DNA of 64,000 nt from Paragordius varius (taxonomy: Eukaryota > Animalia > Nematomorpha). Within the stretch, counting starts at the first letter, position 1, and each line of letters begins with the position of its first letter. The stretch is from assembly GCA_964247055.1 (NCBI GenBank), contig OZ176050.1, forward strand, positions 12,524,001 to 12,588,000, given 5' to 3'. Both the position numbers and the translations under genes were made by a program. The notes beneath the pieces were generated by a model. The model ran no database searches. It worked only from the letters and a program-made list of their open reading frames with translations, and had not been told where the DNA came from. This document shows, piece by piece, positions 1 to 64,000 of this stretch.

Positions 1-687
1 AGTCAAATTGTTGTTTTGGCCTTCTTTGTCAAAAACTGTCATTTGACTGTTTTGACAAACTAAGTTGTTATTACTTTATAAATTTGGCACACCACCAGCA
101 GAGTTGGCCTTTGTAGTTTTTTTTTCGTCAAAAGGAAAGCTTTTATAGATTATTAAATTTTGGCATTTATTATATTACAAAGTGGAGAAACACATGTTTA
201 CGAATTCCATGTTGTAGTCAATTATCCAAAAACCTCTCGACACATTTTTTCGAATGCGCATTTACCATGTGCTTAATGTTTTACGCGGTCCGCTTATTTA
301 ACTAAGCTTACCATATATTAATTATATAGTCAATAAATAATTCTTGTTGTATCTTAAGAGAGATAAATTAAGATGATATTTTTTCAGGGATATTATTTGC
401 TCCAAAATTAGCGCATATAAAGCACTCAATGTGTCATTAAGTTAATTTCTGTCTTCCCACACCAAATTTTTAGCCTATTTTTTACAGACTCTATTTATCA
501 AGATAAATTGTTAATTTTTCATTACATATTGCCAGATATAATACACAACAAAGAGGCAATATTATTGGTTTGATTCGGTGGGCTATAAAATTGTATATTA
601 CCCCTTCTTGCTGATCATTAATTCTACTCTTTATTGTTATTGCTATCTGGTAATACTCAAAATATGACAAACTAAATTTTATTTTAG

Positions 688-2661
688 GTCACTATAGAAT
701 ACGGGCTAGAAAGTGGTTCCTGTGTTCCACTGCGTTGTCACACGATAGTCATGTCCTGCCAACATGACACGAAAACTACGGTTGAACAAGTGAGACACGA
801 TGTTATGGACCATGTTATAAAATCTGTGATTCCAGCTAGCTTGCTCGATTCCCAAACCATTTACCGCATAAATCCGGCCGGACATTGGGTCCTAGGAGGT
901 CCTATGGTAAGAGTTTTTTTACATCCTTTGAAAAATTGTAAAGTATCATCGCAATTGATTTTCATAATTTTTATTTTAATTACTTTGGTGCGAATAATGG
1001 TTTTACTAAATAAAAATGGCTGTTTATTTGGTGTTTTTTTAACTAAATTTCAAAACATCGAAAAGATTATTTAAAACTTATTTTAAAAAATGAGAATTTA
1101 TTTATGCGATAATTTACATATTTAACGAACATATATATATATATATATATATGATATTTTTAAATTTTTTTCCTTTTAAATAATCAATTTTAAATAATAT
1201 CTTATTCTCTAAAGAGACTAAAACCCTATAATCGTATTTTTATTGCTTCTATTTTTTTAGGCGGACGCTGGATTAACCGGTCGCAAAATTATCGTTGACA
1301 CTTATGGAGGTTGGGGTGCTCATGGAGGTGGCGCATTTTCTGGCAAAGATTATACCAAAGTTGACCGATCAGCTGCTTATGCTGCCCGCTGGGTTGCTCT
1401 TAGTTTAGTTCGGTCCGGTTTGTGCAAACGGGTTTTGGTTCAAGTATGTCCCCGTTATATTTAATCAAATTGAAGATCATTGCAAAAAAAATATTTTATC
1501 AAATCATTTTTTTTAAAATAATTAAAGGATAACTTAAAACATAAATACTAGTGGAACTATTTTTATATTATAAGACATTTTGGTTATGTGTATGTTAAAT
1601 TTCTTTCGTCTGCGTTTTTATGTTGAAATGCTATCAATAAAAGTAGTGTATTAATGCGCCGTTTTCGCTTTTATATTATCATTGAATGATAAATATTGAT
1701 GATTATGGGTCTTAATAATAAGCCCGAGTGCTACCTCCCCTTGATGTTTACTGAATTACCGTTGTTGAAGTGTTGAATGTTTTAAAACATTGACTTTGCA
1801 TAGAGTTTTTTACAAGTGCATGTGAAAAGTAAACTCTCACCATGTATTCGATAGAGAATGATAAATTTAAATTTTGATGTCTTACTCTTGCACACAATCT
1901 TAACTTATCACAATCTAATGATACTATTATTCATCATCTGATAAAGCTTCTCTTTCATAATGCAATCAATAAATAATCTCAAATATTTTTTGTGTTGTCT
2001 TTGTGTGACAAAAAACAAATTTTATAAAATCTTATATATATGTATATTATTTAGTTATCCTATGCAATCGGAATAGCTGAACCTCTATCTATCACAGTAT
2101 TTTCGTTTGGAACATCCAAAAAATCGGATGCTGAACTATTGGATATTGTTAAACGTAACTTTGATCTTAGACCCGGGAGCATAATTAAGTAAATTTTAGC
2201 GATAATTCTGTAACTTATATTGATCTTGAACACATTATCTTTATTAAGATATATTGTGTCTAATATAAATTATATTGAAAACTAGTTGAGATAATATGAT
2301 AACATGCTAATCTAAAATATGTATTTAAGTAAATTTTTTTTGTTAATCACTTTATTACAATGCCTTACGTTACGCTTCACAGTGTTAGTTTTTTAAGTGA
2401 TTTCTTTTGACGAACACCACTGGGTGTGTATGCATTTTAATATTTGAAATAAATTTCATTTATTTTTTATACTCGTATACGTTTACTAACTGCTAACTAC
2501 ATGAAAATACATGCAATATTTATAACCAATCCTAAATATATTTCCACTTCAGAGAATTAAATCTGGGTCGACCCATCTACAGCTCGACAAGTAAATTTGG
2601 CCATTTCGGGCACAAGGGATTCCCCTGGGAACAACCTAAAACCCTTATCATCCCTAAATAA
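688..2661 (+). CDS. MAT: S-adenosylmethionine synthetase (methionine adenosyltransferase), 3' part with proximal terminal exon A; 5' exons lie upstream of the window
   Basis: Exons 688-906, 1261-1443, 2055-2188, 2553-2661 join by GT-AG in consistent phase. They give ...[48 protein letters not shown]...SYAIG...NFDLRPG...PIY...FGHFG...FPWEQPK, the MAT signature motifs. Confidence 0.97.
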
Positions 2662-3736
2662 TTATGTGCAAAACAACTCACTTTTAAAAAGCACCGTCCA
2701 AAAAATTTGATTTCCCAAGCGAATAGCAAAATTAGAATACTATACAAATATTTGACCTGACAATATATCCGTTTATAACATTTCTTCTTTAATGCAAACA
2801 TTTATAAATTAATATGAAAATATTTTAAATCAATTACACCTTTATGACAAAAAGAGATTTCAGACTTGAATCAATCTGTACATACTTTCACAATACAATA
2901 TATTAGTTATATGCATGCCCGCATTTATATTGATTGCTACAATGGATTTTTTATTTCATATTCTGCCACTGTGTGCTGGGTTCAATTTAGTCTAATTGTT
3001 TGATTTGCTCTTCTACCATTTTTTTATAAAACCATTTAAACTTTTTGAAAATTTTGTTTTTTACATGCATACCCATTTCAAATGCAATCCTAAACGCAAC
3101 TTTTTTATTTTATCTTTAATTTCCATTCCATTTAATTTTATACATACATTTCGTAATGTTATCAATCAATCAATCACATATATAGGCTATTGAAGTTTTT
3201 TAGGGAATCATGCAATAATACACATATGATATAGATATTGACTTTGTATGATACGCTTAATTATACATATTTTTTACTTTCAATATTGATTTGCAAAATG
3301 GAAATATTGGATTGGATGAATTTTCACAATTATATTTACTATAACCTAAGCATTGTTAATAAATTAAACCCGGTGGTGTTGGTCTATTTTTGCTATTATA
3401 TCCTCAATCCAATAACATTAAGTATCCTTTATATAAAATCCATGATACCTTGGGTCATACATACATTTATATGATTTTTTAAACTTTTATCAAAAAGATA
3501 TGACTTTTTTTGCGTGAGAGGTATTTAATACATACATATGATCAATACGTATGTTTCACACAATCTTATATATAATAATGATGTTTGTATTGAATAAATG
3601 CTACTTAAACTTTTTATATCCTGGTTAAATTTTATTTGTAATAATAATACTCCTTTAATAAAATTAAGGTTAAAAAATTTATCATTATTATCTGATGATA
3701 AGATCTTTAACAAAAAACATATTATTAAAATATTAG

Positions 3737-3860
3737 GGATTTGGATCTGAAGAAACCCATTTACCTTACCACTGCCAAGTTTGGCCATTTTGGCAATCCA
3801 CAATATTTATGGGAACATGCGAAACCTTTAGTTTTTGACAACACTGATAATGTTATTTAA
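3737..3860 (+). CDS. MAT: MAT alternative (distal) terminal exon B
   Basis: AG acceptor at 3735-3736 in the same phase (2) as exon A. Reads (K)DLDLKKPIYLTTAKFGHFGNPQYLWEHAKPLVFDNTDNVI*, a homologue of the MAT C-terminus. AATAAA at 3980-3985. Confidence 0.88.
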
Positions 3861-6800
3861 ATGTTTGAATAGATTATTTTAAATGATGAATTAAAAAAAT
3901 ATATTTTTTAACTTTTAATGTAACTTGACTGGAAAAGTGTGTACAACTTTGTGTAAATAATTTTTAAACAGATATTGTGAATAAATATAGTGTTTTTAGT
4001 TGTTGTGATAGCTAAATGGTTTGATCATTTAGTTAGCTTATTTACTTCATTATCTGTATTACTATAAACACGGCTTGGAACCGGAACTATCTTGAATCAA
4101 AACATGGTTTTGGATAAATTTGCAGTATTCTTGATAGATTGAAACTGTGCTTTTAATTTTTAAAGAATCACCACATCTGGAACCACTTTCTTAAACCGGT
4201 CCAAAGCCCGATTAAAATTAACAAAAAAATGAGAAAACGAAGATAAATTACTATTTTTCAATAATTACAAATTATATTTAAGTATGACTCTTTGGGCCAC
4301 ATATTCAATGATGGTATAGTAGAGGCCGGATTCTCACACTGCGTGCCTGAGTTCGAACCCCGGAACTACGCAATTTTTCCATCATCACTGTCAGCCCTGG
4401 GCAAGCGAGTGTTAAAGCCTTTACAAGTCCGGATAAAATTCAAAAGGAAAAAAGAGACTTTATATTATATTTTGGATGTAGTCATCTTACTCACCTCGAA
4501 ATTAAGATTAAAAGATTTGTCTGCTTCATCTGGGTAAATTTTATATATAAAAACGCAATTTAGAAGCCAAAATATTAAAAAAATTGATTTTTTGCTTTTA
4601 TAAAAATGGATGGAGTGTTATTTGAATACATATTTGTGCGTGGGCTTACATAGAAACTATATTTTTCCAGATAATTAGCTCATCCTACGGAAATGTGAAA
4701 TTACTTCAGGTAAAAAAAAATTTACGATTCATCACCGTATGTGGCCCTTGGTTATCATATCTTTCACACAATTGGTAAAGAATTTCTGTTTTAGGCATAA
4801 TTGATCATGTATTTAATTTTGGAACTTTTCTTCAAATAAATAGGCAAAAATCGGGAAACAGGTTAGCCCATCGGTAGCTTCGTTTGCAAATTCACTTATA
4901 TCTAGAATCCACATTAAAAAATTTACATTTTGATTGCAGGTATTTTTAGAAGAAACAAAAGTTAGGCCCATAAAATTACGGCATTTTAAATGTTGAAGAC
5001 TATACATTCTAACACTCTTCTATATCACCCAAAATCTGCTCGATTTACCTCTATTTAATTATATAAATATTTGCACAACAAGGTTATTAATAATATTAAA
5101 TAATCCGAAAATAACATTAGTTTTGCAATTTACATTTCATTCATTAATTATATTAAATAATCCGAAAATTACATTAGTTTTGCAATTTACATTTTACAAA
5201 AAATATTTTTTTAAATTATCCTAGACAATGTCAAAAATTATATTTAATTTTTACTGGCACTAAAATGTTCAATCACAACTATAAAAATCCCCCTAAAAAA
5301 CTGAGTCGATAGATCCTTTTCTCCCTATTTGTATTTGAAGGGTATTTATAATATATATATTTTATAAAAAATATACGCTAGCTTTGGTGTAAATTGCAAA
5401 AAAATTTTTTTTATACAACCGTTAAATCATTTTTTGAACGCAGTATACTTGGTAAACTCTAAATTATATAATATGACAATTAAAATAAATTTTATATCTT
5501 TTAATAACAATTTTATTGGATTGAATTTTACCCCAAAGCACAATTTTTTAACATTTATTCCTGTAAATCCTTCAAGGACCTTTTGTTTTTAAAATCTTAA
5601 TCGATAATATATTGTTTCGTTTGGGATAACTTTTATGGCATATATATTGTAAAATTTCGTAGCCGCCGATTGTATTTAATTTTATTTGATCTAGTGTGCG
5701 ACAAGAATGTGATTTTTTGATTTTTACTGATAGCAAAAAAATCTAAATAACTTTTTTTCTAAATTGTCAACCGCGTTTATTTTTGATATTCATTATCCTG
5801 AAGCTTTTGGTCATCAAATGATATATGATTCATAAATAACACTAGTCGACAAATTCGGACTTTTTTGAGCACACCATCCAAATTTTAATTTATGGCTAAT
5901 TTTAGTGTTCTAAAACCGAATCTGGAAAAAATTTGATCGCCCCAATCAGAATTTTGAGATATTACAGGTTTTTTTAAAACAAGAGATAATAGACAAATCA
6001 AATATAACTTTATAATAAAAAGTTATTATATTATAAAATTGTTAACATTTAATAAAGCGTTTTAAACTCTATCTTTTGAATAAAAATATGTCATTATCAA
6101 GGCGAAAAAATAGTACGGGTGTAAACGTTAAAATTTAGAATATTTTGAAAGCTAATTTTAAACACGCATAAATTTATAAAAAATACTAAAAGAGGCAATT
6201 TGTGGTTTAAACCTTACGCTTTCAGATAGGCTATATTTATTTTGTTAGTTTTGGTAGTTTTTAGTGCTTATTAGGGTTTTTCTCTTTCGGTTGATTCCTA
6301 CAAAAAATTTTTTTATTTATACCTAGCGGCTATTATTTATTTTGAAAATGATTGGATGCACTATAATTTGAAATTCAGATAAATGTTGGGTAACCACTTT
6401 TATTACCAGGATGATGGATATCCTACCATAATTTTAACTACAATATGACCACTTGAACTTATCTATCTTCTTATCCGATTTAATGATCAATGTCTAACTC
6501 CATTTGAATTGGTTAGTTTGATCGATTTCCCTGGATTTTGATGTAGCTAAATACGTTATAATATATGCAGGTATGCTCTCCTACCGGGCTCTACGATCAC
6601 CTCATTGTATACCCTTTGCCATATCTGGCTAAATTATAGGATTACTTGGGGGATGGAGCTTGTGCAAGCCGCCCGGATCTATAACACCACACCATACATC
6701 AGCCCTTTTAGATTTTTAATATTTTTGATTTGTAATACTCTTTGACTCATAGCAATTTAAATTCTATATTCTTAAATTTTCGTATTCTCTTTTATTTAAT

Positions 6801-8520: not shown

Positions 8521-9633
8521 ATGAAAATAATTGATAATCGATGGTTACTTTTTTGGCCAATTCTAATAGTGTGGCTGGATGCATACATTATGCCAGAAAA
8601 TCGCTTGTATTCCCTATACCAAGATTATATACATAATCGAATATTGCCTACAAATAGTAACACAGGTTATATCGAAACTCAACATTCTCATAATGTTAAA
8701 CCGCCCTCAAATCCCAAAAATTCTGTCAGCAGCGTAATAGTAAGCCCAAAGAAAAAGATATCTATCCTATATCTCGGAGATTCAAATAAGAATGATTTTA
8801 ACTTTAATGAAAATATTATGACCACCACAGCTAAACCAAAAAAAGTGCGTAAAAGAATTCAAATCTTTAACCTAGAAACAAATAAAAACAACAAAAATTT
8901 TACAGACGATTCTCAGAAACTAACAAAAGATGAGGACATTAACATCAACAAGAAAAATATTAAATTAGGTGGTGTAACATTTTTCAAAGATTTAACTTCA
9001 GAAGACGATTACCCGGAATTTAGCGATCAACTTGATAACGAGGAAACACCAAACAATAAAATGGCGAATATAATTAAACAAAAGATCATACATGGTGATT
9101 ATGATATAAAAAAATATCGTAACGCTGAAAATGAAATAGTTTTACCATCTCGATTTCGATTTTCCATTTCACCTTCTACAGAAGATGCTAAAGATAATAA
9201 AGAAGACAATTTTATGAAACTTGGCAATATATTAAATGATCAAACACCGAATTCTCGTCATGGTGTTTTCGAAGACTATGTCGATTTAGATCCTGATTTA
9301 ATACCCTTAAAGACAAAGCTAAAGGCTATAAAAACTACGTTTGATTTTTATCGCAATGCCACATCTAAAGTAAGGGATAAGGCGATGTTTGGAAAAAATG
9401 TTAAGAAACAATTAAACAATTACAACAACTTTTTAGTCCCAGATGATATCTTCAAAATGGAAAAATATCAATGGTTTCGTATAAACCCACGTGGAAAACA
9501 TAATGAACAGAATAGAAACCGCCCATCAAAAATTAAAGAAAAGGGTTCGATACTCTTTGTAGATGTTGACAAAAGTGGTTTAGAAGAAAAACAAAAAAGT
9601 TATATTTATAATTATTTAAACATGAAATTTTAA
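8521..9633 (+). CDS. Single-exon 370-aa Asn/Lys/Asp-rich protein with N-terminal signal peptide, unknown function
   Basis: A 1113-nt ORF in very AT-rich DNA. Hydrophobic N-terminus (WLLFWPILIVWLDA). No family recognised. Confidence 0.75.
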   Translation: MKIIDNRWLLFWPILIVWLDAYIMPENRLYSLYQDYIHNRILPTNSNTGYIETQHSHNVKPPSNPKNSVSSVIVSPKKKISILYLGDSNKNDFNFNENIMTTTAKPKKVRKRIQIFNLETNKNNKNFTDDSQKLTKDEDININKKNIKLGGVTFFKDLTSEDDYPEFSDQLDNEETPNNKMANIIKQKIIHGDYDIKKYRNAENEIVLPSRFRFSISPSTEDAKDNKEDNFMKLGNILNDQTPNSRHGVFEDYVDLDPDLIPLKTKLKAIKTTFDFYRNATSKVRDKAMFGKNVKKQLNNYNNFLVPDDIFKMEKYQWFRINPRGKHNEQNRNRPSKIKEKGSILFVDVDKSGLEEKQKSYIYNYLNMKF

Positions 9634-10521: not shown

Positions 10522-11643
10522 TTGTTATTTTTGTATGTCATGATAGAAACTCCATTATATTTTTTGGAAAACGACGCCCAAAACCTGGAAAAAGAATCGG
10601 AAGAACGTAAATTTGAAATATCGCACATTGGTAAAGTTAAAACTAATACGCGAATCGTTTCCCCACCAGAGTCACGAAAGGGTGTTGAGGGCCCATTTTT
10701 GGGCGAGGTTGTAAGAATTCCAAGCAACGATGAGATGAATAACAACGAATTTGGCAATAAAAAGGATAATAATATAAATAATTTAAATATAGAGAATAAT
10801 GATTATTTTGAATCAGCGGATCCGTCAGAAACATTTTATCAATGGTCTAACCCTGAATTCGATATTTTCCGTAAGCGAAAACTCCCACACACTACACATT
10901 TTATCGGACAAAAAGTTAACAGAAACCAAAAATCTGAAAATATGAGTATTAATACAAAAGATAGTGCAAACAGGAGAACTGAAACAGTGAAATCTAATAA
11001 TGACGATATAAGCGATTCGTTAAATCTTATGGTGAATCACAGTAACAAAATATATGGGGATATATTTACCTTTAATAGCAAAACTAAAAAGATTGCTTTA
11101 TCCCCGTCTGCCTTTAATGATCAAGTTATGTCAAATTCAATATTCCTTCAAACTAATCTACCTATTCATCATACAACCCGTTTATTACCAATACTAAGTT
11201 TTGCGAATTATACAAGTCAAAAAAATAATTTTACTACGGAGAAGAATTCTCACAAACACGATAATATAATGAAAGATGTTACAAATTTTATTAATTTGAA
11301 TTCATTAATCCCTTCAAATTTGTTGGGTTCAATGAATTTTTTCTTCCCAACCATAAAAACAAAACGCATATCATCATCAACGCCGAACACAGCAACGGTA
11401 AAAAATGTTTTTTTATTATAATTTTCTTTCCCAAAAATCTAAATTTTCCAACAAATTTTCTTTTTCGAATTAACATTGTAATCAAAAATAAATCTATGAA
11501 GATGATGTGAGCGAACCCTTGTAATGCACATGCTTCCCTACTTATAAATTTAATATTTTTTCTGTACCTAGGAAAACACAGTTGAAAATAATACCCCAGA
11601 CTCAAAAATCAAGAAAACATTTAAATGGGATGAATTATGGTAG
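10522..11643 (+). CDS. Asn/Ser-rich orphan protein, at least two exons (10522-11397, 11572-11643); start uncertain
   Basis: A 900-nt ORF with a phase-0 donor at 11398 (ACG|GTAAAA) and acceptor CCTAG at 11567-11571. Last exon reads ENTVENNTPDSKIKKTFKWDELW*. Confidence 0.65.
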
Positions 11644-23783: not shown

Positions 23784-26700
23784 TCAAAACTGCCTCAATA
23801 AATCTCGTAATTCCAACAAAGAGTTTTTCATCTAGCAATTATAAAAGTAATAAAATACCATTTTAGATTTTAATTTCTTTAAAAACAATTTCTGTTTCTT
23901 TTTTATGTTTGATAGAAATTCCATTCGTTCCTCACTTTCCAATTTTATTTTGTCATTTTGGATTTCTTTTATGGCTTGGCCAATTATATTGCTATAATTT
24001 ACCAATCTAAATGCAAAAAAAGTGTAAATTTAAAAACAAAATGTAAAAAAATTTTCATCATACCTTTCGTTTTGATTAGCCATATTTTGAGTTAACAAAG
24101 GTTGAATTTCATAAACTCGCTATTAATTTGTATAAGTTTATAAATAAAACTTGTATGGCATCCAGATATTCGATCCAAAGGTTACGATTTATATTGAGTT
24201 GCTCTTTCTCATGGTTAAATATTTTTCTGATAATATTCTCAAAGTTGTAATTATTTTCGCTATTTCTATGCATATTATTATTATAAATAACATTTAAAAA
24301 CATATAAATGTGATAACAAAATCTTAAAAACCAAAACCTTGGGTTATTAGAAGGAATTAGGGCTTGGTTTTTAATTTATAAAAATCTCGTGGTTTTTTTA
24401 TAAAAGCATGTTGTTTAAGAGACAAATTAAAAGATTGCGCTATTAAAAAAGTGATCAATGAGCTGTTCACCACGCTTAGTATTTATAGAAAATTGCCGCC
24501 GTTCACAAAAAAATAAAACTATATTTTAGTATTTAAAAAATTGGAATTTACAGACAATTTAAAGGAAAACATCAACATCAACAAAAATATTAATTTTATG
24601 AGAACATTTTAAAAACATGCCCTCTGCCTGCACCAATAAATAGTTGATTTTAAAAAGGCTTGAGCTTTAGATGAGATAAAATAATGGCTTTCGATTATGT
24701 TTTTTCTAAAAAAGCGATTGAAAATATTGAAAAGACATGGTACCGGTTCCAAACATATATGAGAAGCGGTTCTGCCACAAAAATAGATGCATGTAAATGC
24801 CAATTATATGACAAATGGAATAATTTTGGGATTGTCAAAAAAACAACGACCTATTTTCAAAGCCGATTTAGCCGGTTTCAAGTGCAGAGAATTTAGAAAT
24901 AAATAAACTTCTAGCTTTTATAGATAAAAAAAGGAATAACCCTTTTTACACTAAATATCTAAATTTCAATTACTATTCCGCTACGCTAGCACAAACTGAT
25001 AATTTATTATAAATTTTTATCTTCAACTATTATATGAATATGTATTGTGGCCTATTGCCAAATTTTAAATGGAAATCCAAATTAAGACAAATGTATGGGT
25101 TCTTTGAAAACATATTTTGGTCAATAATCATAGGGTTGTTAATAAATCCAAAAAATTAAGATTTTAAATATAATTTCCAAAAAAATTATTTTTAAAATCA
25201 TATACCCGCTTTCAAGTAGAGATTTAAAATCAGGTAAAGCTATCATTTCTGTGGGGACCTATGAATACTTGGTTAAAAGCTTATATAAACTTTTGTAATA
25301 TTATGTTTTTGCTTGACATCATTATTGTTGATAGGTTGTTTTGAACCACTTTTTATTTTGGTCGATATTTTGACGGAACTTATATGGCCTAAAATATAAA
25401 TATTTATATAATCAATATATTCGTCAAAAGGTAAATATTAAAAAAATCATACTTAATTTCTTGTAGGAAGTACACATGCTCATATCTTGTAACTAAACAA
25501 ATGAAAAAGGGAAGTATATAAAATTATTATTAATTTTCTGGTTTTAACCATTTATAACTGTCTGATCAGAGGGGATAATAAATTTGTTTTGTTTAAAATA
25601 TATTTTAATCCTATTAATCTGGAAAAACTGATATTATAATTACTTCTTGAAATTGTTGACATATTGATAGCAAATCATTGTTGTTTGGGTATGATGGCGA
25701 CGATTGGATTGATGTGTTTTTATTTGTTTTATTCTTATCTCCATAACTAAAATAAAAAATATCAGATTAAAATGGCCTTATCAGTAATGTGTTGATAATT
25801 TAAAGTCTTAATAAAAGAATATAGCCCTACATATCCCTATATTTTTATCATTTCTATGAATTTAATATTGCAATTTATAAGCTTATTTGCCAAAGAGTTA
25901 AAAGATACTATAAAATCGTTCCAAGATTCTCAACAAAATATCCCTAGTGTATGTTATAAAAGCATCAACACATTTTTTTTTCCACACCAAAATAGATTAA
26001 TTACAAATGTCGGTAAACTAAATCCATGTAGGGCGTGTTGTTAGAATTATCGGATTCTATCGTGCGCTGGAAAGAGCTGGTATTTTGCAAAGTTGTATCT
26101 TTAATCAATGGTTTATTATAACTACAGATTGCAGCGGGTTCGGTAGGTTTTATATTGGGCTAGACATTTTTAAATATGATCCATTTTGAAAATAAATTAA
26201 ATTAAGTTCAAAAATATTTTCGTGTGATAAAATAAAACTTACATGTGAATCAACCGTTTGTGATTGATTGGAAACGTTATTGGTTTTTTCTAAAGCACTC
26301 TTATTTTTTATCGTTAAGTTTGAGACATCATCATATTCAGATTCTGTTGTATAAGGCGATGGATTTAAAACATTAGCATAACTATCATTAATTTTATTTT
26401 TGCCGGCTAAGTGGTTCCTCTTATTTTTTTCAACTTTTTCGATGACGAGTTCATTGTAGGATGTGTTTTTGGTTTCATCAAGCAGGAGTGAAACATTATT
26501 CTTTTCATTGTGTTTAAAATCACGTTCAGAATCTTTTTTACAGGTATTTTTATCGGATGGAAAATTAACCGAAACATTAACCGATAGAACTGATGGTTGG
26601 TTATCAACACCACCTTGGGAAGATGTAGAGTTTGATGCAGGTGAAACTACTTTATTTTGCTGAGAGCGACTTTTACCAAAGTTATTAACGTAAGAGTTAT

Positions 26701-29700
26701 TCTCTTTTTCATTACTTTTGTTTGCAATATTATTATATCTTTTCTTATAAGGATTTTCTATTGATAGAGTTGTTTTATTAACTGTATTTAGCAGCTCTTT
26801 TTCTGGCATCAAATCGTTTCTTTTTCGTTTTTTGCCATATGTGTTTAGTTCTGTGGTAAAAACGGAATCTTTATTTATTGTTGTTTCCGAAACTAACGTT
26901 TTAGATTTTTCGTTCATATTATTGTCATCAAATCGTTCAAAATTTTTAGATGTTATGGTTTCTTTGGGTTTTTTAATTTCCCTTAATTTGGCAAATTCAA
27001 TATTATTTGAAAAATTTACAACCTTATTATTACAATTTATTTTGTCTGGACTATGCTCTAATTTGGTAGCATTCTTCTTCTTGTCTTTAGTTTGTTTCCT
27101 ACCCGATGTCGTATCAATAATGATCGCAGATGGTTTTTGATTGATTTTAATATCGAAGCTATTATCTTTTGGTTCAATAGTCTCTATATTTTCTTTCTTC
27201 AGTCCTGGGCTAAGCAATTTCGATTTTGATAATGCAGTTGCCTTTTTCACGCTTTTTGCCGTATTCAATGATTGCTCAATCAATAACTCATTTTCGGTAT
27301 CAAAATCGTAAGCCTCTTCAGTGATAACCGGCTTTTTAAGCACTATTTCCCTGGGATCTTTTATTGTTTTGTTTAAACTTGTATTAGTAACGTGCGTTAT
27401 TGTATCTTCGTATCGTGCAATTTGCGTGTTAGTTATTTCACATTGTTTAGCATTTCGATTTACTGATTTTTTTTCCATTTTAGGTGGCAATTTTGTATTA
27501 TCATTCAATAAACTATTTTTAGATGAAGTGTTTTGAGATTGTTCATTAAGTTTTTGACTTAATCTTGTTTCATAACATTTGATAACGGTAGTTTTTTCCG
27601 CTTTATCTTTAGCATTTACCTTTTTGACTGGACTCGTGGATGTTTTAGTTTTGGATGACGCATTGTTTAATGGAAAATCTTTTGTCAAAGGGGTATATCT
27701 ACGCACTGGAATAGGTTTTCGCTTATTATCAGATATATTATTATTCCGTAATGATATTTTTTGATTTTCAACTACGGTTTTAGCTGCCTCACGTTTTTTG
27801 GCACCCGGTCTAACAAACACATCCAAACTTTTCGGTGTGGAAGAAAATATAGGGTCTGGGTAGGATTTAGTCTTTTTGATGAATGTTTTAACATTGTTGG
27901 CGGAATTATTTTCATGGTTGACTTGTAAATTGACTGTTTTTTTGTCACCCGCATTGTTTTTATTATCTGCTGACATCTCCAAATTTGTCCTATTATTAAT
28001 GGATTGACTATTAGTTAGGATAATGCTACAATCTTTTATGTTGATCGACTTTTCCTGTTTGGGTGGTTCGAGTTTTTTAACCCCTTCTGATGACTTTTGT
28101 GAGCGTAATACACGGGTAGTGGTTGTTTGACTTAAATTTTCGGGGATCATTAGAAAAGAATCAAATTCTTGTGAAAACGTTTCTAGCGACCGTTTCTCCA
28201 CTGTCTCATTGGACAATGTAATTTTTGTTGTGTCATTAGCGGGATTGTCATTTGGTTTTTCACCTGATTTTTGGGATAATCTCTGGGACATTCTAAGGGG
28301 CCGTAATTGGGTATCTTCTTTTGATACCGCTTTTAATGAAGAGTTTAATGATTTTTGTACTTTTTTATGGTTATTTGCAGATTCATTTATTGCTTTGTCC
28401 TTGATTTTTTGTTGTTCATTAGTAGTTTTCGCAGTATTTTTTAATCTATCTGACTCAATTTTTTCCTCGCTTTTGGAAGATACCCGTTTCTGCAATTCTA
28501 AAAGGATATTAATGTCCGGTTTCGAGCATCGTTCAAATCCTATAGCATAAAATAATAATTGTTATAATTTTTTGCAATATGTGATAAAATTTTGGCATAT
28601 AATAGGAAACATAATAAATTTAAAAATATCTTGAGGTAAAAAAATTTATATAAATATAAATACTCATCTGAGTTAAAGGTGTATTATCGGACGGAGCTTC
28701 GGAATCATAAATAGCAGGTGAGAGAAATGTTGGGCGGCTAATATTATTCTTTTGAGGGGATTTTATCTTTTCGGTACTTACAGTTTTTTCATTGTCCTTA
28801 ACTATATTGATGGATTTGTGTTCGGAACTAATTTTAATAATATTATTTATAAAAAAATATTCAACAAAGTAAAAATAAAAAGAATTTGCAATGATGATAA
28901 TTAAACTAGCGTTATAAAATAATTTTACCAATAAAATAATTATAGTTTTACCTGATAGGTATAGGTTGTGAAACGGTAAGTTGGGATCCATTGTTTAGAG
29001 TTGTGTTTAGGGTAAAACCAACTATATTATTCTACAGTTGTATAAAATGGTAAATGATAAATATGATTATTGAATAGAACCGAATAAAATTTTATTATTT
29101 TTGTTATAAATAGCGCATAAATAATACCTGGATTTGACAACCAAACATTTCTCCCAAAGCTTTAGAAAAGGACGCCTCATAGGGGAAAAATATGTTAATA
29201 AAATTTTGACTTCCGTTATTTTGCCCATTACTCTCTGGAAGAATCGCTACTCTGTGGGGAGATGAAACGCGTAATAAATGCACCAAACTAATGTTAACTT
29301 GAACTCGAAATTCAATTGTAGGTTGCCATTCTAAATTAATTTACATGAATATTTTATGATAATTTTTAATGCTTAAATTAGCCTTACTCGTGACTGATAA
29401 GGAGCTTATTTGATACTTGAAAATCTCCATGCTTTCCCATCGTTCTTGGTTTCCTTCCTAATAATAGATGCAATATTTTGTTTAAATTACGTTATAATGT
29501 TTATTCCTGATCTTAACATTTTTTAGCTTTTTTTAAAATTTTACCACATAATATATACCTTATATGCCACATTGAATGAAAGTGAAGATGTGATGATGTT
29601 AATATCCAACCATAATTGCGTAACATTATCTTGAAATTTTATTATTTGCATCAAAATGTCGCCAAAACAAACGGAAAAACAATCAAACGAAAATACACGA

Positions 29701-62279: not shown

Positions 62280-64000
62280 TTAATCTTCCAAGAAAAAGAA
62301 ATTTCCAGACTTCTTTTGATCCACATCCTTGACTGAGTTTAGTTTATTAATACGCGGCCTAAAATTGTTAGGGTCCCTACGGAATGTTATGTTAAGGCTC
62401 TCCAAAAATTTATTCATGCCCAACAACAAACTTTGGGGACTATTGGCATGGGAGACGACAGAAGGTGTACCCTCAAAAACTATGACACGATCAGCCAAAT
62501 ACGTTGCCATAATGAAATCGTGTTCAACCACGAAAGCCGTTTTCTTGGCATGGAGGATAAAGCGTTTAATAACTTTGCTGGCAACTAAACGCTGTTCGGA
62601 ATCAAGGTATGCCGACGGTTCATCAATCAAATACACGTCAGCAGGTTTCCCCAAGCAAAGTGTTAAGGCTACTCGTTGAAGCTCACCACCAGATAAGTTT
62701 TGTACCTCAAGGTCTAACAAGGGATCCATATTCATGGGTTTGATAACGTCCGCAATAAATTGCGGGTGAAGAAATGCCTCTTGTATCCGCTCCAATAACA
62801 AATTACGAACTGTACTCGTGTACTTGGGTGATATTTTTTGCGGTTTATAGCTTATGTTAAGAACAGGTACTTCAGCACCTTCGTCCGGTTTCAGATTTCC
62901 GGCTAACATACGGATCAAGGTAGTTTTCCCCGTCCCATTTTCTCCCAATAACACGATAATTTCGCTGTCAGTAAAATCACCTTCCGAAATGCTAAGGGAG
63001 AAGTCACCAAGATGTTTTGACATAGCTGGATAACTATAATGACGCATACGTTTAATTTCTTCTTTGGATGCCGTTTCTGCAACCTTGAATGTGAGAGAAA
63101 CGTCTCGAAACCTGAGATTTTCTGTGGGAACAAATCCATCAAGAAATATGTTAATCCCTTCGCGTACACTAAAGGGCATAGTAACCACTCCATAGGCCCC
63201 AGGCATACCATACAAACAACAAATGTAATCGGAGAGATAATCGAGTATAGATAAATCATGTTCCACAACTATGATATAGTTATTGTCACGAATTAACTCA
63301 CGTATGGCTATGGCAGCGTTTAGCCTTTGTTTAACATCCAAATAACTGGATGGTTCATCAAACATATAAATGTCGGCGTTTTGAATACAGCACATGGCAC
63401 ATGCAAATCGTTGCAATTCTCCACCACTTAAATCACTAATTTGTCGATTCATGAGTGAAGGTCCTAAATCTAACCTTTCACAAATACCGTGTTGGAATGC
63501 AAACTTACTCATTTGAACGGGATCATCTTTGGCATTAAGAACGAATCCGGGTAATTTTTTAGCCAGTAATTCTTGAACAGTGCCTTGAGCCGCTTTAGGT
63601 ATTTGATCAACATATTGAGGCTTGATTAGCGCTTTGAGATTGTCTTCCAAAATTTTAGTAAAATAATTTTGAAGTTCTGAACCTCGAAAATATACTAAGA
63701 GTTCGGACCAATCTGGTGGATTTTCATAACGGCCAAGATTGGGTTTAAGCTTGCCAGCAAGAATTTTTAGAGCAGTCGATTTACCAATACCATTGGTTCC
63801 AACAAGACCCAAAACTTCACCAGGCCTTGGAATAGGTAATCTATGGAGTTTAAATGAATTTGCTGAATATCGATGCGTGGTATCTTTTTCCAGATCACTC
63901 GGAAGATTAATAATCTGAATGGCTTGGAAAGGACATTTTTTAACACAAATTCCGCATCCTATGCATAATTGTTCTGATATAAGAGCCATTTTGTCTAGGG
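62280..64000 (-). CDS. ABCE1: ABCE1 (RNase L inhibitor / Rli1), 5' end outside the window; no introns in 1710 nt
   Basis: Second Fe-S cluster motif [12 protein letters not shown], Walker [10 protein letters not shown] and GENGTGKT, two LSGGELQR signatures, DEPS, C-terminal FRPRINK. Confidence 0.98.

Follow-up and report, generated by a model that had tools for sequence, protein, structure and literature searches.

The MAT gene and its two terminal exons

The window analyzed here is a 64-kb stretch of DNA from Paragordius varius with a GC content of 28%, and the genome of this worm is very AT-rich. A gene for S-adenosylmethionine synthetase (MAT) lies on the + strand and is already under way at window position 1. 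The 5' half of the gene is located upstream of that position, and the PF00438 N-terminal domain is therefore outside the analyzed sequence. Exon e1 (688..907) aligns with residues 184-255 of human MAT2A, and the translation of 688-906 matches Pfam profile PF02772 with an E value of 5e-14 over profile positions 56-119 of 120. Exon e2 (1261..1443) accounts for the C-terminal domain's highly conserved core, with a match to positions 6-66 of PF02773 (E 1e-31). Exon e3 (2055..2188) continues that match over positions 67-110 (E 1e-11) and is the upstream exon common to the two terminal exons described below. It ends in phase 2 with the two codon bases 'aa', which are followed by the donor gtaaat.

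Two terminal exons, designated A and B, lie downstream of e3 on the + strand. The proximal exon A (2553..2661) follows an AG acceptor at 2551-2552 and encodes 35 residues up to a TAA stop, and the distal exon B (3737..3860) follows an AG acceptor at 3735-3736 and encodes 40 residues, likewise ending in TAA. Exon B runs 7 residues beyond the usual end of a MAT protein. The two exons have the identical splice phase, and the first base of each completes a Lys codon (AAx). A preliminary description of this DNA had placed two same-phase AG acceptors after position 2188, and the coordinates and frames it gave are exact; the translations of A and B were also as it reported, with both exons open to TAA. 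The interval between the two exons (2662..3736, + strand) is 1075 nt long with a GC content of 24%, and tblastn detected no MAT-like sequence in it. In transcripts that end with A, this interval would supply the 3' UTR and the poly(A) region, and use of B would make it intron sequence. The downstream neighbor of the MAT gene is a lineage-specific, low-complexity open reading frame. An exact look-up of a neighboring open reading frame returned no match.

A second, complete MAT gene to which B might belong was not evident. Searches of the 64-kb window with tblastn identified no MAT-like pieces other than e1-e3, A and B, and no decayed copies of e1-e3 were found between A and B. Since there is no other MAT-like sequence in the 64 kb, B lies outside any second full paralogue, which agrees with what the preliminary description had concluded about B.

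Public sequencing reads bear on the integrity of the assembly at this locus. Five public runs from two studies, none of them RNA, carry the locus, and four of these were aligned to window positions 1-5000. All four aligned runs cover introns and are thus DNA, while possible RNA runs under the same species label contain next to no words of the locus. Contigs from runs X1 and X3 are identical to the window. Runs X4 and X5, which come from another sample, carry a haplotype that is about 6% diverged in the introns and has many indels. Contigs of this divergent haplotype are colinear with the window from intron 3 onward, across exon A and then the interval and, it seems, into B; colinearity at exon B was judged from the depth and the extent of the contig, and each of the four DNA runs covers exon B. 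Mis-assembly, which the preliminary description had named as a possible source of the arrangement, is unlikely because independent DNA runs, including those with the divergent haplotype, tile the region colinearly.

Homology, age and selective constraint

The evidence from sequence comparison supports the view that the last coding exon of MAT is present here in two homologous copies, A and B. Exon A matches positions 112-138 of the Pfam S-AdoMet_synt_C profile (PF02773) with an E value of 2.8e-5, and exon B matches positions 112-137 with an E value of 1.7e-4, so that by profile match the C-terminal domain is complete with either exon supplying its last positions. The two exons also match each other in tblastn (E ~1e-8, 50% identity over 32 residues, gapless), and the 16 identities among 35 aligned residues noted in the preliminary description were reproduced in a gapless alignment. 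The extreme C-terminus of solved animal MATs aligns gaplessly with both exons and with near-equal scores of about 32 bits. When residues 364-396 at the C-terminus of rat MAT1A are used for the comparison, exon A scores 32.1 bits with 17 of 31 residues identical, and exon B scores 32.6 bits with 21 of 33 identical.

The duplication is old. Rat MAT1A is nearer to each copy (17/31 for A and 21/33 for B) than the twin copy is (16/35), and the flanks of A have no alignable similarity to the flanks of B. The ancestral states retained in the two copies differ: the canonical start DLDLKKPIY survives in B, and the canonical end FPWE.PK.L in A. In addition, a derived Lys-Phe before GHFG is common to A and B, which argues for a duplication specific to this lineage. 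Identity between A and B at codon positions 1, 2 and 3 is 19, 26 and 12 of 35, respectively. The excess of identity at position 2 over position 3 is significant by permutation (P = 0.0005), and identity at third positions is at the level expected at random. Counting by the method of Nei and Gojobori gives a pS of 0.90, which is saturated, and a pN of 0.32.

Base composition and reading-frame integrity provide further measures of coding character. GC at third codon positions (GC3) is 0.49 in exon A compared to 0.24 in its flanks, and 0.35 in exon B compared to 0.24-0.26 in its flanks. Only about 5-8% of AG-anchored frames in the window are open for at least 40 codons. We simulated the neutral decay of a copy with the base composition of the introns and an indel/substitution ratio of about 0.44, which was taken from the introns of the two haplotypes (about 43 gaps per 98 substitutions). 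The simulated neutral copy had an open frame in 23-6% of the trials at 0.25-1.0 substitutions per site, and none of 20,000 trials was free of indels. A copy that has been neutral since the duplication is excluded because the simulation predicts a broken frame or indels. Taken as a record of the whole period after the duplication, these data support purifying selection, and the pattern of divergence shows that both copies have remained coding through most of that history. At most one copy could have dropped from use, and that would have happened very recently.

Differences between the haplotypes address constraint within the species. All 10 of the haplotype differences listed in e1, e2 and e3 are at third codon positions, including 6 of 6 in e2, and current constraint on the MAT gene is clear because the differences listed in these exons are confined to third positions. 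The flanking introns of exon A differ between haplotypes by about 6% substitutions plus many gaps, and at the intron rates some 12 substitutions and 5 gaps would be expected in the segment 2521-2713; the divergent contig over this segment, which includes exon A, has 5 substitutions and 0 gaps. For exon B, there are no indels among the differences listed in the divergent haplotype, and just upstream of B the differences listed in the same contig include three small indels and two large ones (117 and 85 nt). The evidence for selection thus spans the whole history after the duplication for both exons, and the figure for present-day constraint is for exon A only.

The MAT gene is itself unusual in its divergence. 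Searches for homologous proteins with exon B and with e1 gave no candidate within the range of lengths considered. In an exhaustive search of representative MATs, e1 was at most 58% identical to any of them, and it departs from near-invariant positions, including changes in the RVHT and STQHD motifs. At the positions of R249-F250 in human MAT2A, e1 encodes His-Trp; F250 of MAT2A stacks on the adenine of the substrate. Exon e2, on the other hand, is canonical. In a profile search with a full-length scaffold and e1-e3, all of the 120 matches listed were MATs from algae and protists. It is possible that the MAT gene described here is an atypical or specialized paralogue, and judging from the substitutions in e1 it is not assured that its product would have full MAT activity.

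Use of the two exons and competing explanations

The signals around the two exons differ in strength. The acceptor of exon A (tttccacttcag) is pyrimidine-rich and strong, and the acceptors of A and the three constitutive exons have pyrimidines at 7-10 of the 10 positions considered. In contrast, the acceptor of exon B (aaaatattag) is weak and A-rich, with only about 4 of 10 pyrimidines before the AG, although its ttag ending is the same as that of the three constitutive acceptors of the MAT gene. A strong proximal acceptor and a weak distal one would fit an arrangement in which A is the default form and B is a regulated or minor form. The only AATAAA hexamers between A and B are at 3358, 3593 and 3657, and there is no canonical AATAAA within about 700 nt 3' of the exon A stop; after exon B, ATTAAA occurs at +30 and AATAAA at +120. 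In sequence this rich in AT, poly(A)-type signals are weak evidence either way. A donor-like GTAAAT inside exon A (after 2590) was also considered as a partner for the B acceptor, but this combination is ruled out by arithmetic since the frame would shift.

On balance, we lean towards the view that the last coding exon of the MAT gene is an old tandem duplicate of which both copies were kept and are used as alternative 3' terminal exons. The preliminary description had proposed that one locus makes two enzymes through use of an alternative last exon. The part of that proposal concerning two homologous, selected terminal exons has held up and is well supported, and the alternative use of these exons is strongly implied. 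From the homology, frame, intactness, divergence and layout observed in the DNA, we infer that e3 is spliced to A or to B. Splicing of B to e3 in place of A is suggested because this is the only evident way for B to be useful.

Under this model of alternative terminal exons, the last MAT coding exon would have been duplicated in tandem long ago, and purifying selection would have kept both copies. Isoform A would be produced when the e3 donor at 2188 is joined to the acceptor at 2553 and the transcript is cleaved and polyadenylated before B. Isoform B would be produced when A is skipped and the e3 donor at 2188 is joined to the weak distal acceptor at 3737. The two isoforms would be built on a common catalytic body and be distinguished by the final 35-40 residues of the C-terminal domain, with B carrying the 7-residue extension. 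Competition between splicing and polyadenylation may determine the choice between A and B, and the tail could alter the oligomer state, partner binding or localization of the enzyme.

A different explanation is that only one copy, most likely A, is used now and that the other is a recently silenced leftover or a source of splicing noise. The weak, A-rich acceptor of B would be in keeping with disuse, and the junctions 2188>2553 and 2188>3737 are both predicted from DNA. The condition of exon B itself is hard to reconcile with this explanation, however. Exon B is fully open, has no indel relative to A and has a raised GC3, and it is nearer than A to vertebrate MAT (21/33). A ttag ending, with T in place of C ahead of the AG, is usual for acceptors of this MAT gene, and as few as 0.25 neutral substitutions per site would already break B, so any silencing must have been very recent. 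We therefore regard the use of a single copy as a rather unlikely alternative to the use of both.

An additional possibility is that SAM-sensing feedback switches the gene between A and B, in a manner analogous to the action of METT-10 at sams-3/4 or METTL16 on MAT2A. Splicing of MAT transcripts is under SAM control in both nematodes and vertebrates (PMC8208822, PMC8139829). In Caenorhabditis elegans, METT-10 places m6A at the 3' splice site of sams-3/4 (PMC8208822), and vertebrate MAT2A has a detained last intron that involves METTL16 and CFIm (PMC8139829). The present case resembles these systems in that splicing of MAT pre-mRNA is concerned, and the vertebrate intron is also terminal. The sams-3/4 and MAT2A systems switch between productive and unproductive RNA, however, whereas the present case involves two coding tails.

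These systems require the nonamer UACAGAGAA or UACAGAAAC in a stem-loop (PMC8208822), and this element, which defines the sams-3/4 and MAT2A systems, is absent at both acceptors here. A point of resemblance is the exon A acceptor (UUCAGAGAA), where UUCAG|AGAA is one mismatch from the METTL16 nonamer UACAGAGAA, but in vitro a single mutation in the nonamer suffices to abolish methylation (PMC8208822). No METTL16/METT-10 motif is present at the exon B acceptor. An exact UACAGARAA was not found in or near the MAT gene; the 64-kb window has 4 matches where 1.9 would be expected, the closest of them lying some 3 kb downstream of the gene. For RNAs of 51-81 nt around the two acceptors, folding showed no advantage over shuffled sequences (z of 0.05, 0.89 and -1.14, none significant), and the AG of exon A is in a predicted stem rather than a loop. 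Moreover, the regulated site in the worm is in an upstream intron, and the upstream introns of the present gene lie outside the window. Control by METTL16 or METT-10 at the A and B acceptors was rejected given that there is neither an exact nonamer nor a significant stem-loop, and the connection to SAM-dependent splicing drawn in the preliminary description amounts to pure analogy. A SAM-sensing switch of this kind is improbable. The same low probability applies to the broader idea that the two tails are more than tissue variants and that methionine or SAM status shifts the choice of terminal exon through splice-site or poly(A)-site competition, which would yield MAT isoforms that differ in oligomerization, partner binding or nuclear localization.

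It is very improbable that B belongs to a separate transcription unit, for instance what is left of a partial tandem copy that has a start of its own, or a transcript that is trans-spliced or lies downstream. The 1075-nt interval between A and B could hold a promoter, but there is no other MAT exon in the 64 kb, and B alone would make up just the final 40 residues of an enzyme of 400. No ATG is in frame within B, which offers only a TTG at 3741, and the exon opens precisely after an AG and in the phase that e3 dictates. Coding-type conservation of family-invariant residues would also be senseless for a free 40-residue peptide.

Relation to known exon duplications and to MAT diversity

The universal methyl donor is a product of MAT, whose isoforms in most animals owe their diversity to separate genes, either MAT1A and MAT2A or sams-1/3/4/5. 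Alternative terminal exons of the kind favored here would place the diversity within one gene. Among animals, alternative C-terminal exons that are homologous to each other form a common and enriched class, which accounts for 77 of 236 human events (PMC9741552). Tandem duplicated exon substitutions are usually ancient, and tropomyosin has three homologous 3' exons (PMC9741552). The arrangement at the present locus is like a tandem duplicated exon substitution in having adjacent homologous 3' exons that have one phase and are both conserved as coding. It is unlike the catalogued swaps of C-terminal exons in that the host gene is MAT, the organism is an AT-rich, poorly studied worm, and the case is known here from DNA alone. 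The case most likely belongs to the known kind in which a tandem-duplicated 3' exon is substituted, and for MAT such a case is apparently unreported, as the literature search turned up no description of a MAT gene whose last exons are homologous alternatives.

The closest parallel in a MAT gene is Drosophila Sam-S, for which a mutually exclusive exon event has been reported (PMC11765297). As in the present gene, the choice of alternative exon in Sam-S falls within the MAT coding region, though the report does not state which exons are involved or if they are terminal (PMC11765297). The Drosophila Sam-S event and the one described here are likely to have originated independently.

If the choice between A and B responds to SAM, and only in that event, the locus would represent a new mechanism. 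Such a metabolic switch would have evolved independently in hairworms, as a coding-level counterpart of the METTL16 and METT-10 loops.

The C-terminus of MAT is poorly understood, and its candidate roles include setting the oligomer state, binding regulatory partners and determining localization. With respect to the last of these, a 2009 study reportedly attributed the nucleocytoplasmic distribution of MAT I/III to signals that its C-terminal domain carries (cited in PMC4993455). One gene with two selected tails would be a natural experiment on this part of the enzyme, and it would add an essential metabolic enzyme to the genes that have been diversified by tandem duplication of a 3' exon.

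Haplotype divergence and a repeat element at the MAT locus

The methionine adenosyltransferase (MAT, or SAM synthetase) gene lies in a region of very high within-species divergence, as seen when contigs of the DNA sequencing runs were compared with the window across positions 680-4000. Within this interval, the introns of the haplotypes differ by substitutions at approximately 6% and by small gaps at a further 2.7% or so, and the haplotypes are also separated by indels of 85-117 nt. All ten of the exon differences listed fall at third codon positions. In intron 2 (1877-1986), a contig of each of the four DNA runs has an identical 22 nt where the window has 108 nt. Either the runs share an alternative allele here, or the assembled haplotype carries a small insertion of its own.

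A short element at 4290-4440 contains tRNA-like A- and B-box sequence, and ARAGORN called no tRNA there. Summed contig depth over the element is 66,000-560,000 versus about 50-900 in its surroundings, and its borders are marked by many loose ends in all four runs. In all likelihood it is a tRNA-derived SINE of extremely high abundance.

Additional open reading frames in the window

Two long ORFs on the plus strand, of 370 aa (8521-9633) and 299 aa (10522-11421), have a high content of Asn, Lys and Ser and no Pfam matches. A hydrophobic segment resembling a signal sequence opens the first ORF, for which an exact look-up in the assembly collection returned no record. The two ORFs may belong to a lineage-specific gene for a secreted protein. 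On the minus strand, an uninterrupted ORF of 569 aa (62280-63989) encodes an ABCE1/RLI-type protein, as its Fer4 and two ABC_tran domains show; it is apparently free of introns in this part, and its start extends in the direction of the window end. Another minus-strand ORF, of 781 aa (26150-28495), has no Pfam match at an E-value of 0.001.

The exon A acceptor and the character of the MAT gene

At the acceptor of exon A (2544-2560), one of two candidate terminal exons, the sequence UUCAG/AGAA agrees at all but one position with the METTL16 nonamer UACAGAGAA, the motif of SAM-responsive MAT splicing control that is normally presented in a stem-loop. Folding of the RNA around the acceptor revealed no significant stem-loop, and a second AG lies 2 bases downstream.

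Comparison of the upstream exon e1 (688-906) with human MAT2A revealed changes at near-invariant positions of the MAT family, which include His-Trp in place of R249-F250, a Cys within the RVHT motif and Met/Cys within the ISTQHD motif. The 5' half of the gene lies outside the window. The highest identity of e1 to representative MATs is 58%, and the MAT gene of the window could be a paralogue that is specialised or evolves rapidly.
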